Shown here piece after piece: positions 35,583 to 44,358 of a stretch of 64,000 nucleotides of DNA. The stretch lies in NCBI RefSeq assembly GCF_006345805.1, contig NC_043026.1, forward strand, positions 9,424,001 through 9,488,000. Direction: 5' to 3'. The notes under the pieces were generated by a model, which had not been told where the DNA came from, made no database searches, and was given only the letters and a program-made list of their open reading frames with translations. How positions within the stretch are numbered: position 1 is the first letter of the stretch; each line of letters starts with the position of its first letter. A program made the position numbers and the translations under genes. The DNA is from Octopus sinensis. Its lineage: Eukaryota.

Positions 35583-35830
35583 GAACTAGGGCATACCTAC
35601 ACAAATGAGCCCCACCTCAGATTTGTTACTTCGTAACTGCCAGAAAAAAGGATCATTTTTAATGAAATTTTCGGGGCTCGAGTGCCAGTAAGGCAATGCT
35701 GGTAACGATCACGCTCGAATGGTGTCTTTTAAGTGCCACTGGCACAGGAGCCGGTTAGCCGCTCTGTCAATGATCACACTCGTATGGTGCTCTTTGCACC
35801 CCGCTAGCACAGACACCAGTTATCGATACA

Positions 35831-36729
35831 TGTAACGGCTTTTTATTGATTGGTAAATATTATTAATATTGTTATATTTCGGAAGGGTCATTTTGCCAGT
35901 TTAGCCAATAAAAACACAAACACTATATATTTGGTGTTATTTATTTTTTACATTAACCTTAATCTTATTTCGGCCAGAGTTCTTTCGTCACACTCCTGTG
36001 ACCTCATCAGTGGTCCTTTGTTTTCTTCTTTCTTATTTGTGTCTCTTTCGCAGTTATGATGATAAAAAGTTATTGCTATTGTGATTGCATACCGTAAGAT
36101 GTGAAAGATAGACAATGCATGAAGTTTTTAGGAAATGTTTATTTGTCGTTACGTTACAAATACCTAGCCTCAATGGGCAGGTTTTGAATATCCAAAGGCA
36201 TGCGAAAATTAGATGCGGTAGAATGTTTGAGTTTGGGTTCTCTTCATTGTTTAGTCGTAATTACAGAGAGATATAGAATGATGTTGTAAGAGAAAAGAAT
36301 TAGAGATAGTGAGAGTTGTAGGGTGTGGAACGTTGTGTCACAGTTGCTGGCAGTAAACTTCAATCCTCCCTCTGGCCAATGTTCTAGCTGGTCAGCCAGA
36401 CTTCGTTCTCACTGAGCTGTCACCGGAGTGACTAACTGATTTTTGCTTGGGATGTTCTTGCTTTTATAACTATCCAAAAGGATAGATATATCATTTAGAA
36501 CAATAGATTTAGTTGGTAGTCTTGTTATCTATTCTAGATTATGAAGTAGAAGTGGTTAGAAAGGGTCAAGTGGTGAAGACATTATTTCGGCCTAGCTAAA
36601 GTCATCTGGAAAATGTAAAAACTGCTGTCGGAGAAAAATCATTGTTCCACCATGGGAAAAGTTCTGTAGCAGTGTTGATTTAAATTTGGCTATGGTGGAT
36701 CGAATCCATTTCATGCAAGATTCACAACA
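35831..36729 (-). mobile_element. Solo-LTR-like element (~900 bp); second copy at 46499-47401
   Basis: TGT...ACA termini, TATA-like TATAAAAG and AATAAA on the minus strand, abutting (TA)n; no TSD could be verified. Confidence 0.45.
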
Positions 36730-37695
36730 TATATATATATATATATATATATATGCAATAACACAAATCCAACGCTAATAGTATGGAGCACAAAAACATG
36801 TCCACGTAATAAGCCCGGAAGCAAGCTTCTTACCACACAACCATGCTCTACTGGTTTTAATAGTTTCATAACAAAATTCATGCAAGACAAATTCAAAATC
36901 TGGAGGAAATGGCCTTTATTGAAAAAAATACCCACAGGTAAGTTACCTGAGATGTGGTGACATAAACTATAGAGTTGGGAGATTGTGAATACATTTATAG
37001 TTACAGAGTGTCCCCTTTTTTTTTTGCATACTAGGAACTTTGACAATTACAGCAATTCTCTGATGAGTAGCTTGGTTAACGCCATGGAGTAAGCCCAGAA
37101 AACTACCACCAATTTAGGAGGAGCTCAAAATGCTGATTGTTCTTATAAATTGTCACATTGATAGTCATACATCTATATGAATAGATACACATTTAGTTAA
37201 CACCAGAAGTACCGAGTGGTCATTTTTCACCAATTCTGCTTATTACTTTTTAATTTCTACAACTGTCTTGAATGTGCAATCATGAGCATCATATCAAGTA
37301 TATGTGTATAGATATATATTTTTCACATGTAAATAAATGCTAAAAGAATGTATTTTCAAATCCTTTATTCACTGCATTTGCTGATATTTAAAATAAATTG
37401 TATTAAATAAAGATTTTCAATGACAGTCAAAAATTACTGTTATGGTCTTTGTAAGAGGAAAGAAATATTGGTACTTCTAGTGTTAACCCTTTAGCATTCA
37501 AACCAGCCATATTTGATTTAATATCCTACCTAATCAGAGTCGGCTTCTTACACCTACCCAACAATGTCATTCTGAAAATACACACATAGATGCAGGAGTG
37601 GCTGTGTGGTAATTTGCTGTGAATGTATGACAAATTGAAAATAACGTGAATAAACAAACATCACATTCGAAAGAGTAACCTTCAATATAAAGGGT

Positions 37696-39816
37696 CTAGT
37701 CACCATTTTCAGAGAGAAGGCTTTTCTCACGTATATGAATACGCTTGTGAGAAGTTAAGGCACTACTTTGAGAGAATGATTTACCACAGACATCACAGGG
37801 ATATGGCTTCTCTCCTGTATGAATACGCTTGTGACGAGTTAAAACGCTACTCTGAGAGAATGATAAACCACAGATATCACAGTGATATGGTGTCTCTCCT
37901 GTATGAATACGTTTATGAGTAGTTAGGTTACTGCTGGCAGAGAAAGATTTGTTACAGATGTCACAGTGATGTGGCTTCTCTCCTGTATGAATACGTTTAT
38001 GATCAGTCAAAGCACAATTGCGAGGGAATGATTTACCACAGATATTACAAGAATATGGTTTCTCTCCTGTATGTGTACGTTTGTGAGAATTGAAAGCACT
38101 TCGGTCAGAGAATGATTTACTACAGATGTCACACTGATATGGCTTCTCTCCTGTATGAATGCGTTTATGAGAAATGAAAGCACTTTGGTTAGAGAAAGAT
38201 TTACCACAGATATCACAGTGATACGGCTTCTCTCCAGTATGAATACGTTTGTGGTTAGACAACTTATCACTTCGAGAGAATGATTTACCACAGATGTCAC
38301 ACCGAAATGGCTTCTCCCCTGTATGAACACGTATGTGTGAATTTAAAGCACTTCGATTAGAGAATGATTTACTACAGATCTCACAGTGATAGGGCTTCTC
38401 CCCTGTATGAATACGTTTGTGTACAGTCAAGGAACTACTTGTAGAGAACAGTTTACCACAGGTATCACAGTGAAATGGCTTCTCTCCTGTATGAATATAT
38501 TTATGTTCAGTTAAGTTAGAACTCACGGAGAATGATTTACCACAGATATCACAGTGATATGGCTTCTCTCCTGTATGGAAGCGTTTATGAGTAGCTAAGT
38601 AGCCACTTTGATAGAATGATTTACCACAGATATCACAAGGATATGGTGTCTCTCCTGTATGAATACGTTTGTGATTAGTTAGGGTACTTCTTAGAGAGAA
38701 AGATTTGTTACAGACATCACAGAGAAATGGCTTCTCTCCTGAATGGAAACGTTTGTGATTAGTTAGGGTACTTCTTAGAGAGAAAGATTTGTTACAGACA
38801 TCACAGTGAAATGGCTTCTCTCCTGTATGGATATATTTATGTTTAGCTAAGGTGTCATTTCGGAAGAATGATTTACCACAGATATCACAAGAATATGGTG
38901 TCTCTCCTGTATGAATACGTTTGTGATTAGTTAGGGTACTTCTTAGAGAGAAAGATTTGTTACAGATGTTGCAGCGATATGGCTTCTCACCTGTATGAAT
39001 ACGCTTGTGAGAAGTTAATCTGCTTTTGCTTGAGAGTGATTTGCCACAGATATTACAGGAATATGTGTCTCACCTGTATGAATACGTTTGTGAGAAGTTA
39101 AACTGCTTTTGCTTGAGAGCGATTTACCACAGATATTACAGGAATATGGTGTCTCACCTGTATGAATACGTTTGTGCTTCGTTAGGGTACTTCCTAGAGA
39201 GAAAGATTTGCTACAAATGTTGCACTGATATGGCTTCTCTCCTGTATGAATACGCTTGTGAGAAGTTAATCTGCTTTTGCTTGAGAGTGATTTGCCACAG
39301 ATATTACAGGAATATGGTGTCTCACCTGTATGAATACGTTTGTGAGAAGTTAAACTGCTTTTGCTTGAGAGCGATTTGCCACAGATATTACAGGAATATG
39401 GTGTCTCACCTGTATGAATACGTTTGTGCTTCGTTAGGGTACTTCCTAGAGAGAAAGATTTGCTACAGATGTTGCACTGATATGGCTTCTCTCCTGTATG
39501 AATACGTTTGTGATTAATTAGGTTACAATTTACCGTGAAAGATTTGTTACAGACGTCACACTGATATGGTTTCTCTCCTGTATGAATACGTTTATGGTCA
39601 GCTAAAGCACTGCAGCCAGAAAATGATTTACTGCAGATATTACAGGAATATGGCATCTTCCCTGTATGAACACGTTTGTGCATAGTCAAGTGGACCCTTT
39701 TGAGAGAATGATTTACTACAGATATTGCATTGATATGGCTTCTCTCCTGTATGAACACGTTTGTGCTTATTCAAGCTGCTCCTTTGAAAGAAAGCCTTTT
39801 TATAGACATCAGTCAT
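37696..39816 (-). CDS. C2H2 zinc-finger gene ZNF-3, 24 fingers, with +1 (~39696) and -1 (~39065) frameshifts (pseudogene or assembly error)
   Basis: ATG ACT GAT GTC TAT start as in ZNF-2; extra G in CAAAAGGGTCCAC; missing C in GAGACA(C)ATAT; continuous open finger frame from ~39064 to the TAG at 37696. Confidence 0.8.
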
Positions 39817-43461: not shown

Positions 43462-43620
43462 ACTTACGCAAATGTCTTTATAAAGGATGGTGTTGTTGTT
43501 ATGAGTGCATCAGGTGGGAGAGAAATGTATTATAAATGTGTTTGGGAGTGAATTGAGAGAAATTCTGGCTTCTCCTGATCTAATCAATGAAAGCGGAAGT
43601 GTGTTTAATGCGCATGCGTA
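43462..43620 (-). promoter_or_regulatory. ZNF-3 putative promoter, exon 1 and donor
   Basis: TGCGCATGCGTA 43609-43620, GCGGAAGT 43593-43600, GTAAGT donor 43467-43462. Confidence 0.6.
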
Positions 43621-43765
43621 TAATTTCAAAATTCGGCACAAGGCCAGCAGTTTCGGGGGAAGGGGTGGTACATAAGTGGATTACTTGGACCCTAGTAGTC
43701 AACTGGTATTTATTTTATGGAACCCCAAAATAGCGAAAGGCAAAGTAGACCCTAACGGAATTAGG

Positions 43766-44196
43766 GGATCTTTTCGGTTTGAACGGCAGTTTTTTTCTAG
43801 CGGTGTCATATGAAATTGTCACCCATAATTATGACCCTAGTATCGATCTATTGCATTTCAATCTGTTTTAGGGTTAGTTAGGGTAAGGGTTAGGGGTGGG
43901 GGAAGGGTATCTTTTTTTCTTCAGAAATGTAAATAAACCCAATGTGTTTCTTAAACGAGGGACATATTCATACGGCACGGAATGTTTGTTTTTTTACCTC
44001 AATAGACGTCATTGATTGGTTGAAATTGCAGAAATTGAAGTAAACAACAACAAATATCTTACAAACTATAGAATTTTCTCAATAAAGCCAAGACGAAAAG
44101 ATGTTTTATAAACACATTCTACCAGTATACGAAGTTTAAAATTTTTTAGTTACCTAGAAATTATGTTCAAAACTGCCGTTCAAACCGGAAAGATCT
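43766..44196. mobile_element. MITE family E with perfect 8-bp TSD GAATTAGG
   Basis: Flanks 43758-43765 and 44197-44204; an empty paralogous site with one GAATTAGG lies at 44629-44636. Confidence 0.9.
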
Positions 44197-44358
44197 GAAT
44201 TAGGGCATACCTACACAAATGAGCCCCACCTCAGATTTGTTACTTCGTAGCTGCCAGAAAAAAGGATAATTTTTAATGAAATTTTCAATAAATACGCTTC
44301 AGAAGTCGGAGGCAATTACTTGGACCTCAGTAGTCAACTGGTATTTATTTTATGGAAA

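Follow-up and report, generated by a model that had tools for sequence, protein, structure and literature searches.

ZNF-3, a hybrid of ZNF-2 and ZNF-4 in an Octopus sinensis C2H2 cluster and the probable junction gene of a tandem duplication

Results

Zinc-finger genes of the cluster

The 64,000-nucleotide stretch of Octopus sinensis DNA analyzed here (hereafter the window, whose numbering is used throughout) contains a cluster of five many-fingered genes within 47 kb. The finger maps of all five genes present Krueppel-type features, namely 28-residue tandem C2H2 fingers with TGEKP-type linkers. ZNF-2, ZNF-3 and ZNF-4 all lie on the minus strand, with ZNF-3 placed between the other two. According to its finger map and the Pfam matches, ZNF-4 (48430..50172) is an intact open reading frame of 580 amino acids with 20 C2H2 fingers (20 stretches of Pfam zf-C2H2). 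KRAB (PF01352) is absent among the 25 listed of the 31 Pfam families matching ZNF-4, and only some 25 residues precede its finger 1; a KRAB domain may nonetheless lie in an upstream exon outside the frame that was read. For ZNF-2 (30536..32382), the finger map, 5' alignment and translations give 20 fingers and one more (31880-31962) broken by a 1-bp deletion at about 31945, with the ancestral ATG also gone. Exact-protein look-ups of ZNF-1, ZNF-4, ZNF-5, the 3' frame of ZNF-3 and a 150-aa frame of ZNF-2 returned no match.

ZNF-3 (37696..39830), as seen from the same three sources, is a poly-C2H2 gene of hybrid composition, with an array of 23 fingers of 84 nt each and one frameshifted extra finger at the 5' end (39648-39732). 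Fingers 3-8 (39060..39479, minus strand) contain a 252-bp in-array duplication that is private to ZNF-3, in which fingers 3-5 were copied to give fingers 6-8 (99% identity between fingers 3 and 6 and between fingers 5 and 8, and 94% between fingers 4 and 7). In finger 23, the two bases AT have been inserted ahead of the stop codon. A run of seemingly ZNF-3-specific changes in this last finger was rejected as such, as it reflects an alignment shift produced by the insertion.

The 5' side of ZNF-3 and its match to ZNF-2

Fingers 1-16 of ZNF-3, together with the 5' UTR and intron-like block and the upstream intergenic DNA (38303..44286, minus strand), are homologous to positions 31122-35672, i.e. 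to the ZNF-2 locus. The first-pass annotation had assigned this side to ZNF-2, and the alignments agree with it; the four 5' fingers that it listed, like its 3' fingers, lie where it had placed them. At the DNA level, fingers 1-4 of ZNF-3 (39647-39312) are 98-100% identical to fingers 1-4 of ZNF-2, while the best ZNF-4 finger reaches only 80-93%. Deletions of 11, 5 and 2 bp are common to ZNF-2 and ZNF-3 in the 5' alignment; they remove the ATG that is retained in ZNF-4 and ZNF-1, and a downstream ATG now stands in frame. The upstream flanks of the two genes match at 97.3%, 95.2%, 90% (an inverted block), 92.5% and 96%, out to position 44286. Counted in substitutions, the fingers of this part diverge by 0.9-3.0% and its non-coding DNA by 2.4-5.5%.

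Repeat and flank comparison places a MITE with 28-nt terminal inverted repeats at 43767..44195, and an orthologous copy is found upstream of ZNF-2 (35022-35581) at the same insertion site and with the same flanks. The target-site duplication GAATTAGGG flanks both copies, just as the first reading of the sequence had proposed. The inverted ends agree over 28 nt at 93%, and the window holds three copies of the element, the third at 569-966. As both copies occupy the same site, the insertion predates the duplication.

The 3' side of ZNF-3 and its match to ZNF-4

The remaining fingers, 17-23, together with 2 kb of 3' flank (35675..38259, minus strand), are homologous to positions 46343-49045 at the ZNF-4 locus. 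Fingers 17-22 are 94-100% identical to ZNF-4 and closer to it than to ZNF-2, with the exception of finger 19 (98% to ZNF-2 and 96% to ZNF-4). For finger 23, the identities are 87% to ZNF-4 and 81% to ZNF-2, values that are lowered by the 2-bp insertion. The flank match that had been proposed for this side is borne out by an identity of 94.3% over 2068 columns between 35675-37700 and 46343-48403. A 17-bp deletion on this side is common to ZNF-3 and ZNF-4, and the fingers diverge by 2.8% and the flank by 0.7-6.0%.

Not all of this flank is equally informative. The segment 36900-37700 is an old 3' flank common to ZNF-1 to ZNF-4, while 35675-36900 is present within the window only here and 3' of ZNF-4, the ZNF-2 locus having no counterpart for it. 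Over the 415 nt that directly follow the stop codon of ZNF-3, the difference from ZNF-4 is only 0.7%, as compared to 3.8-6.0% further out, which points to constraint or to later conversion. The description of the 35690-37700 region as LTR-like had to be dropped, since neither direct nor inverted repeats of 18 nt or longer were found within 35600-37750.

A single main switch of nearest neighbour inside finger 17

When identity was followed in sliding windows of 200 nt, as had been suggested for a check of these loci, positions 35700-38300 were nearest to the ZNF-4 locus and positions 38300-44100 to the ZNF-2 locus. The nearest neighbour of ZNF-3 thus changes at about 38300, in a single main switch that lies inside finger 17, between 38302 and 38260, and so within the span of fingers 17-18 originally named for it. 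Site patterns and the maximum chi-square statistic were used to delimit this exchange interval (38260..38302, minus strand), which belongs to the finger with the recognition helix RSDKLSN. The 184 informative sites divide between ZNF-2 and ZNF-4 as 84:15 on the 5' side of the switch and 16:69 on its 3' side. The maximum chi-square was 80.4, with the breakpoint between 38302 and 38293, and none of 10,000 permutations reached this value (p <= 1e-4).

Directly 5' of the exchange interval, ZNF-2, ZNF-3 and ZNF-4 share an identical 31-nt tract (38303-38333), which encodes the linker and first cysteines. Register and frame are both kept at the junction, fingers 16 and 17 of ZNF-3 being exactly 84 nt apart, and finger 14 of ZNF-2 aligns to finger 13 of ZNF-4 without gaps. 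The switch is not perfectly clean, however, as some 40 nt of finger 17 show both patterns in alternation.

For derived states, ZNF-1 served as the outgroup. On the 5' side, 15 derived states are shared by ZNF-2 and ZNF-3, none by ZNF-3 and ZNF-4 and one by ZNF-2 and ZNF-4; on the 3' side, 21 are shared by ZNF-3 and ZNF-4 and none by the other pairings. This 3' test was built on matched segments, as whole-flank alignment is spoiled by a 565-bp insertion in the 3' flank of ZNF-2 and by the array of ZNF-1, which extends past its own stop codon. The shared deletions, three on the 5' side and the 17-bp one on the 3' side, agree with both groupings.

These counts bear directly on the simplest alternative, in which the genes are plain serial duplicates that never recombined and the mosaic arises from uneven rates, with the 3' fingers of ZNF-2 and the 5' fingers of ZNF-4 evolving fast. 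Non-synonymous changes do concentrate at recognition-helix positions 10-17, so that some of the patterns reflect selection in single lineages. Nonetheless, rooted derived states and shared indels change partner at the switch (15:0:1 on the 5' side and 0:21:0 on the 3' side), the non-coding flanks switch likewise, and rate differences cannot yield shared deletions or kilobases of flank that are found in only two of the three loci. We thus consider this explanation scarcely credible.

The duplicated unit, its age and its private changes

The intergenic DNA behaves in the same manner as the genes. Positions 32400-37700 are colinear from end to end with 39830-48420, in six blocks at 90-97% identity (one of them inverted), with private insertions between them. 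The duplicated unit today measures 7.2 kb in one copy (31121-38302) and 10.8 kb in the other (38302-49087). A block chain identifies a stretch of 2.06 kb (44287..46342) that is found only in the intergenic copy between ZNF-3 and ZNF-4, and that was either inserted once the duplication had taken place or deleted from the other copy. Additional private sequence lies at 40530-41413 and, as a SINE-like copy, at 42013-42416, while the segment 42455-43037 is inverted relative to 33943-34470. A tRNA scan found no tRNA genes, and the SINE-like repeats therefore carry no tRNA-derived annotation. Elsewhere among the repeats of the window is a fragment of a Pif1-type helicase, typical of Helitron transposons, whose best named matches are Octopus bimaculoides proteins at 71% identity.

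Substitutions in non-coding DNA amount to 103/2533 (4.1%) in the comparison with the ZNF-2 locus and to 78/2033 (3.8%) in that with the ZNF-4 locus, and the two halves of ZNF-3 are thus of one age. For comparison, the parents ZNF-2 and ZNF-4 differ from one another by 7-10%. Finger dS is 0.03-0.045 on the ZNF-2 side and 0.066 on the ZNF-4 side.

It should be considered that the copy number and the join of ZNF-3 rest on one assembly. Assembly is difficult across tandem 84-nt repeats, and three 1-bp frameshifts in ZNF-2 and ZNF-3 sit in runs of 2-3 identical bases, where consensus errors are possible; ZNF-3 could accordingly be a mis-join, or a divergent haplotype placed in tandem. A mis-join predicts near-identity to the sources, yet ZNF-3 and its flanks are 2.4-6% off each supposed source in non-coding DNA and the window contains no N. 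Nor does such an origin fit the private insertions of 0.4-2 kb, the inversion, the 252-bp finger duplication or the missing finger. The longest exact match of ZNF-3 to the ZNF-2 locus is 194 nt, and that to the ZNF-4 locus, the longest to either neighbour, is 367 nt. As private differences are spread throughout ZNF-3 and exact matches are this short, the gene is not a computational splice of its assembled neighbours, and we judge an artefact or haplotype mosaic to be quite improbable.

Gene conversion offers a further explanation, by which ZNF-3 would be a whole-gene duplicate of one neighbour that was half overwritten by the other. Conversion-like exchange does appear active in the cluster, given a stretch of 101 nt in perfect identity between ZNF-2 and ZNF-4 at finger 19. 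Moreover, patches that match the wrong neighbour occur in ZNF-3 in finger 10, finger 14 (38529-38510) and finger 19 (38076-38074), and the minority sites are significantly clustered in these three fingers and at the 5' end (runs test, p = 2e-4 and 0.03). Since these sites cluster in patches, events beyond a crossover are needed, so that the crossover was overlaid by short tracts of gene conversion or by bursts of change in the specificity residues. For the mosaic as a whole, however, donor-like similarity reaches 6 kb upstream and 2.6 kb downstream and takes in the whole intergenic region on each side, including sequence without any counterpart near the other neighbour, and divergence is equal on both sides. 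High-identity tracts that end about 1-2 kb from the switch and give way to older flanks were looked for and are not the case; similarity instead continues to the next gene, and only the small patches are bounded and short. End-to-end colinearity of the intergenic DNA is expected of a duplicated unit but not of a conversion tract. A tract reaching as far as the next gene would be indistinguishable from a crossover and much less economical, and conversion of half a gene is therefore improbable as the source of ZNF-3.

The reading frame of ZNF-3

As assembled, the translations divide the ZNF-3 reading frame into three pieces. The ancestral ATG is deleted (5' alignment), the first retained finger has a +1 insertion near 39700, and the frame is shifted again by a -1 deletion at 39060. 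The ATG at 39816, which the first-pass annotation had called rescued, is the downstream one and stands in frame as it does in ZNF-2, but it opens only a stub of 58 amino acids. From the ATG at 39683, only seven ZNF-2-type fingers are read. The hybrid junction falls in the third piece, which has no ATG, and no open reading frame in the translations of the assembled sequence connects a start codon with the stop codon across the junction. A protein homology search with the junction-spanning frame was dominated by generic C2H2 proteins at 37-58% identity and yielded no orthologue.

The suggestion that recombination in the array had created a new composite DNA-binding specificity is therefore not upheld for ZNF-3 as assembled, with its ATG lost, two frameshifts and no frame that spans the junction. 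As the hybrid is not one open reading frame, ZNF-3 is most likely a decaying or truncated copy rather than a working 23-finger factor. ZNF-2 is also frameshifted.

The 1-bp indels of ZNF-3 may, nonetheless, be errors of the assembly. Were they consensus errors, or very recent, ZNF-3 could be, or could recently have been, an expressed factor of 23 or 24 fingers, a reading that we regard as unlikely although still conceivable. Such a factor would join ZNF-2-type to ZNF-4-type fingers, with RSDKLSN in finger 17 as a hybrid helix between RSNDLTE and GSGKLSN. Four of the eight ZNF-3-specific changes are synonymous, where about one in five is expected; with only eight changes, this is a weak excess, and it leaves open an expressed hybrid factor, with which it is compatible.

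Discussion

The single main switch, the incongruence rooted by an outgroup, the colinearity of the intergenic DNA and the equal divergence of both halves identify ZNF-3 as a chimera of ZNF-2 and ZNF-4, in keeping with the misaligned exchange within the array that had been put forward at the outset. ZNF-3 is thus likely to be the junction gene of a tandem duplication that resulted from one unequal crossover between these two older paralogues, where crossover, rather than another duplication process, is what we infer from the pattern. ZNF-2 and ZNF-4 would have been misaligned by one gene unit, with the 84-nt register kept, and non-allelic homologous recombination would have taken place within or just past the conserved tract that encodes the linker, where finger 14 of ZNF-2 and finger 13 of ZNF-4 begin. 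The new middle gene would have received the promoter side and fingers 1-16 from ZNF-2, followed by fingers 13 onward and the 3' flank of ZNF-4, and would have been left between its two parents. In the order of events that seems most plausible, the changes to the finger array came after the duplication, namely the 252-bp duplication of a finger triplet, the loss of one finger and the three small indels of ZNF-3. The transposon insertions, the 0.5-kb inversion and the short conversion-like patches would likewise be later.

The locus provides a clean and datable case in which one misaligned exchange in a finger array copies a 7-kb unit and adds a gene to the cluster. The sequence of one locus reveals where the exchange took place, which unit was duplicated and how decay followed. 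The data should not be over-interpreted in terms of function: as the frame of ZNF-3 is broken in the assembly, the locus represents ordinary cluster growth, by a textbook mechanism that is amply described for vertebrate zinc-finger clusters, rather than proof of a new DNA-binding protein. With the hybrid and one parent frameshifted, growth here gave at least as much decaying sequence as new factors. If ZNF-3 were nonetheless expressed, in-register exchange from gene to gene would regularly supply the cephalopod zinc-finger expansion with new binding specificities.

Anti-Lepore-type hybrids, such as the products of haemoglobin beta-delta duplication and the red-green opsin hybrids, arise by misaligned exchange between tandem paralogues of the same orientation. 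ZNF-3 resembles them in the order parent-hybrid-parent, in having one in-frame switch and in the duplication of the whole inter-gene unit. It differs from them in that the exchange lies inside a repetitive 84-nt array, where register as well as frame was kept, and in that the once continuous frame of the hybrid has since been broken up.

It is accepted that poly-zinc-finger clusters grow by unequal crossover and non-allelic recombination (PMC5363842, PMC11952569), and that such exchange also takes place within finger arrays (PMC3890296). The mammalian KRAB zinc-finger clusters show the same tandem growth by segmental duplication, unequal crossover and non-allelic recombination, and the same gain and loss of fingers within arrays, many pseudogenes and transposon-rich surroundings (PMC5363842, PMC11952569). 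In contrast to those clusters, the present one belongs to a cephalopod, its ZNF-4 has no KRAB among the Pfam matches listed and little sequence before finger 1, and the exchange occurred from gene to gene in the coding array and not between retroelements. In the PRDM9 array, a coding minisatellite, in-register recombination of 84-nt fingers likewise gives new finger orders, and variation is likewise concentrated at DNA-contact positions (PMC3890296); PRDM9, however, exchanges between alleles, while here two genes 17 kb apart were involved and one gene copy was added.

Cephalopods possess large lineage-specific families of many-fingered C2H2 genes, some of them in tandem, as described in PMC12513265 (and in PMC10547256 for metazoan ZNF turnover), and the five tandem genes of this window resemble them. 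In a term search, neither of these two papers was found to name unequal crossover, gene conversion or chimeric genes as a mechanism. The cephalopod expansions have so far been described mostly through gene counts and expression, whereas here a mechanism can be read at the base-pair level, and the locus may thus serve as a worked example of an intragenic hybrid within them.

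Zinc-finger genes and other elements of the window

The window contains no N and is AT-rich (GC about 38%), with (TA)n runs and short interspersed repeats abundant throughout. Poly-C2H2 zinc-finger genes are found on the minus strand at 17043-18479 (ZNF-1, 16 fingers), 30536-32382 (ZNF-2), 37696-39830 (ZNF-3) and 48430-50172 (ZNF-4), and on the plus strand at 62213-63163 (ZNF-5). ZNF-4 presents an intact 580-aa reading frame of 20 fingers, all 20 stretches being recognized as zf-C2H2 by Pfam, with no KRAB among the Pfam families listed. Within ZNF-1, a 336-bp (four-finger) unit is repeated about 3.6 times (16777-18386), and the 84-nt finger-like periodicity persists for some 3 units beyond the stop codon, suggesting that an array once longer was cut short by a premature stop. 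In the region 61829-63163, ZNF-5 is oriented opposite to the other four genes yet has their conserved 5' block and a number of their finger types, suggesting an inverted duplication at the cluster edge.

Apart from these genes, a 12.3-kb minisatellite (2319-14585) comprises about 410 copies of the 30-bp unit AACAACGATTTGCTCCTCTCACTTGCAGGG, with about 91% match and a GC content of 51%, as compared to about 38% in its surroundings. This repeated unit accounts for the many long 'ORFs' seen there in all frames, and the one array ORF scanned contained no Pfam domains. Helicases of the Pif1 type are typical of Helitron transposons, and a 155-aa minus-strand ORF with a Pif1 2B domain (23536-24003), with best named matches in Octopus bimaculoides (71% identity), is probably what remains of a Helitron-type helicase; by these matches, the genome resembles that of an octopod. 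Further arrays are found at 54306-55230, 55981-56865 and 58990-60667: two consist of about 5 copies each of a 184-bp unit (95% match), and one of 5.8 copies of a 292-bp unit. The sequence flanking them is likewise duplicated, a 62-aa ORF included (55179-55367 and 56814-57002).

Change of nearest neighbor along ZNF-3

To characterize ZNF-3, every 84-nt finger was compared in register with all fingers of ZNF-2 and ZNF-4. For fingers 1-4, identity to the same-numbered fingers of ZNF-2 is 98-100%, as opposed to 80-93% to any ZNF-4 finger, and fingers 15 and 16 also match ZNF-2 (99-100%), while fingers 17, 18, 20, 21 and 22 show 94-100% identity to ZNF-4 versus 87-98% to ZNF-2. A 252-bp repeat private to ZNF-3 makes its fingers 6-8 copies of fingers 3-5. 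In sliding 200-nt windows along 35000-44500, the nearest locus is ZNF-4 from 35700 to about 38300 and ZNF-2 from there to 44100, such that the change of neighbor sought along the gene was indeed found. Considering all three-way alignable blocks (184 informative sites), the best single breakpoint falls between 38302 and 38293, with ratios of ZNF-2-like to ZNF-4-like sites of 84:15 upstream and 16:69 downstream; the chi-square of 80.4 was reached in none of 10,000 permutations.

With ZNF-1 as outgroup, derived states in the 5' block are shared by ZNF-2 and ZNF-3 at 15 sites, by ZNF-3 and ZNF-4 at 0 and by ZNF-2 and ZNF-4 at 1, whereas in the matched 3' proximal flank ZNF-3 and ZNF-4 share 21 and the other pairs none. 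Deletions follow suit: relative to ZNF-4 and ZNF-1, ZNF-2 and ZNF-3 have 11-, 5- and 2-bp deletions in common at the 5' end, while ZNF-3 and ZNF-4 share a 17-bp deletion in the 3' proximal flank. Rate differences without recombination cannot yield deletions whose sharing partner changes between sides. The first-pass description of ZNF-3 as ZNF-2-like on its 5' side and ZNF-4-like on its 3' side is thus borne out by finger identities, sliding windows, breakpoint test and outgroup states alike.

Duplicated intergenic unit

Over its whole length, the DNA separating ZNF-2 from ZNF-3 (32400-37700) is colinear with that between ZNF-3 and ZNF-4 (39830-48420). Successive blocks pair 32400-33091 with 39834-40529 (97.3% identity), 33405-33942 with 41414-41949 (95.2%), 33943-34470 with 43037-42455 in inverted orientation (about 90%), 34547-35381 with 43300-44130 (92.5%), 35524-35672 with 44138-44286 (96%) and 35675-37700 with 46343-48403 (94.3%); for the 3' block, the earlier label 'LTR-like' (35690-37700) is unsupported. 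The ZNF-3/ZNF-4 copy contains additional pieces at 40530-41413, 42013-42416 and 44287-46342. Both copies carry, at the same site and between the same flanks, a MITE with 28-nt inverted ends, which is therefore older than the duplication.

The inverted stretch of about 0.5 kb (33943-34470 against 42455-43037) is bordered by short repeats that match either way round, which gives the impression of a foldback or MITE-like element whose interior has flipped. The MITE copy upstream of ZNF-2 carries a nested insert of about 136 bp (35387-35522) that the orthologous copy (43767-44195) lacks; this insert is 93% identical to a SINE-like repeat at 40889-41032, with further copies at 45974-46114 and 63438-63794.

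As the intergenic regions are colinear throughout, 31121-49087 is a tandem repeat of one unit, the copies of which now measure 7.2 kb and 10.8 kb. The left end lies in ZNF-2 finger 14, the junction in ZNF-3 finger 17 and the right end in ZNF-4 finger 13, all homologous positions. Unequal crossover between ZNF-2 and ZNF-4 would generate this order of parent, hybrid and parent, and we consider it quite likely that ZNF-3 arose as such a chimera, as first proposed, given the switch, the colinear unit and the equal age of both sides (see below). The decisive feature is the colinearity of the intergenic regions, outside the gene. Were ZNF-3 a mosaic made by gene conversion alone, tracts of 6 kb and 2.6 kb would be needed, reaching as far as the neighboring genes and including sequence with no counterpart at the other neighbor. 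Mis-assembly splicing loci 2 and 4 predicts near-identity to both, but non-coding divergence of ZNF-3 from either locus amounts to 2.4-6%, the longest exact sequences in common are 194 and 367 nt, respectively, and the locus is further set apart by insertions and a finger duplication of its own, an inversion and the lack of one finger. A correctly placed haplotype-specific duplication, or a subtler artefact, is possible.

Age of the event and point of exchange

Counting only substitutions in non-coding DNA, divergence on the ZNF-2 side is 19/793, 22/535, 17/383 and 45/822 (in total 103/2533, 4.1%) and on the ZNF-4 side 39/1020, 36/598 and 3/415 (78/2033, 3.8%); synonymous divergence of the fingers (0.03-0.07) is in a similar range. 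ZNF-2 and ZNF-4 differ by 7-10%. As both sides are equal in age, the data fit a single event, considerably later than the divergence of the parents.

When nine consecutive fingers are aligned without gaps, informative sites are mostly ZNF-2-like through position 3 of finger 17 (38302) and mostly ZNF-4-like from position 45 (38260) on, the narrowest exchange interval being 38302-38260. The exchange point directly follows a 31-nt tract (38333-38303), identical in the three genes, that encodes the linker and first cysteines of finger 17. Over the next 40 nt, ZNF-2-like and ZNF-4-like patterns are interleaved, helix codon 13 being GAT in ZNF-3, AAT in ZNF-2 and GGG in ZNF-4; this interleaving has the look of patchy mismatch repair or of parental changes that arose later at contact residues. 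The resulting helix, RSDKLSN, itself falls between RSNDLTE and GSGKLSN.

By a runs test, minority sites form clusters both upstream (p = 2e-4) and downstream (p = 0.03): four ZNF-4-like sites fall in the finger 14 helix and three in finger 10, and a single codon of finger 19 holds three ZNF-2-like ones. Divergence from ZNF-4 is as low as 0.7% over the 415 nt directly 3' of the ZNF-3 stop codon. Superimposed on the crossover are short conversion tracts or else bursts of change affecting specificity residues, which leave the main picture unchanged. Finger 19 (VSSALIS) of ZNF-2 (30620-30703) and ZNF-4 (48502-48585), exactly the finger absent from ZNF-3, is 100% identical over about 101 nt, with 7-10% difference on either side, which suggests a separate short conversion between these two genes.

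Reading frame of ZNF-3

The 5' deletions of ZNF-2 and ZNF-3 removed the ancestral ATG and both first-finger cysteines and brought a downstream ATG into frame. From the ATG described as 'rescued' in ZNF-3 (39816), 58 codons are read before a stop. A 1-bp insertion lies in an extra finger that ZNF-2 has lost. From the ATG at 39683, a 222-aa frame covers seven ZNF-2-type fingers and is ended by a 1-bp deletion at 39060; fingers 8-23 and the junction lie in a third frame that has no ATG, and, owing to a 2-bp insertion, a 13-residue tail takes the place of the normal stop codon. The ZNF-2 frame is broken after finger 4 by a 1-bp deletion, and the 1-bp frameshifts differ between ZNF-2 (31880-31962) and ZNF-3 (39060 and about 39700). 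As all 1-bp indels in both genes lie within runs of two or three identical bases, they may be consensus errors. As assembled, two of the four tandem genes are not intact, given the frameshifts and the shared loss of the ancestral ATG in ZNF-2 and ZNF-3. The proposal of a new composite DNA-binding specificity is not supported by the assembled sequence, in which the junction frame lacks an ATG and the reading frame is in pieces. Against its donors, ZNF-3 gives dN/dS values of 0.13-0.59, the replacements being clustered at helix positions 10-17; somewhere in these lineages, constraint has thus acted at the protein level. Only 8 changes are assignable to ZNF-3 itself, half of them (4) synonymous.

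Comparison with known systems

The anti-Lepore-type hybrid is the known counterpart of a parent-hybrid-parent gene arrangement, and the ZNF-3 locus is its zinc-finger counterpart in arrangement. Mammalian KRAB zinc-finger clusters are known to undergo unequal crossover, non-allelic recombination and the gain and loss of fingers, and to contain abundant pseudogenes (PMC5363842, PMC11952569); for PRDM9, in-register exchange among 84-nt finger repeats is likewise established (PMC3890296). C2H2 expansions have been described in cephalopods (PMC12513265, PMC10547256), but in neither of these papers did a term search turn up unequal crossover, gene conversion or chimeric genes as a mechanism. As comparable exchange is established in KRAB clusters and PRDM9, the mechanism is not new, and the ZNF-3 locus should be considered a well-resolved example of it.
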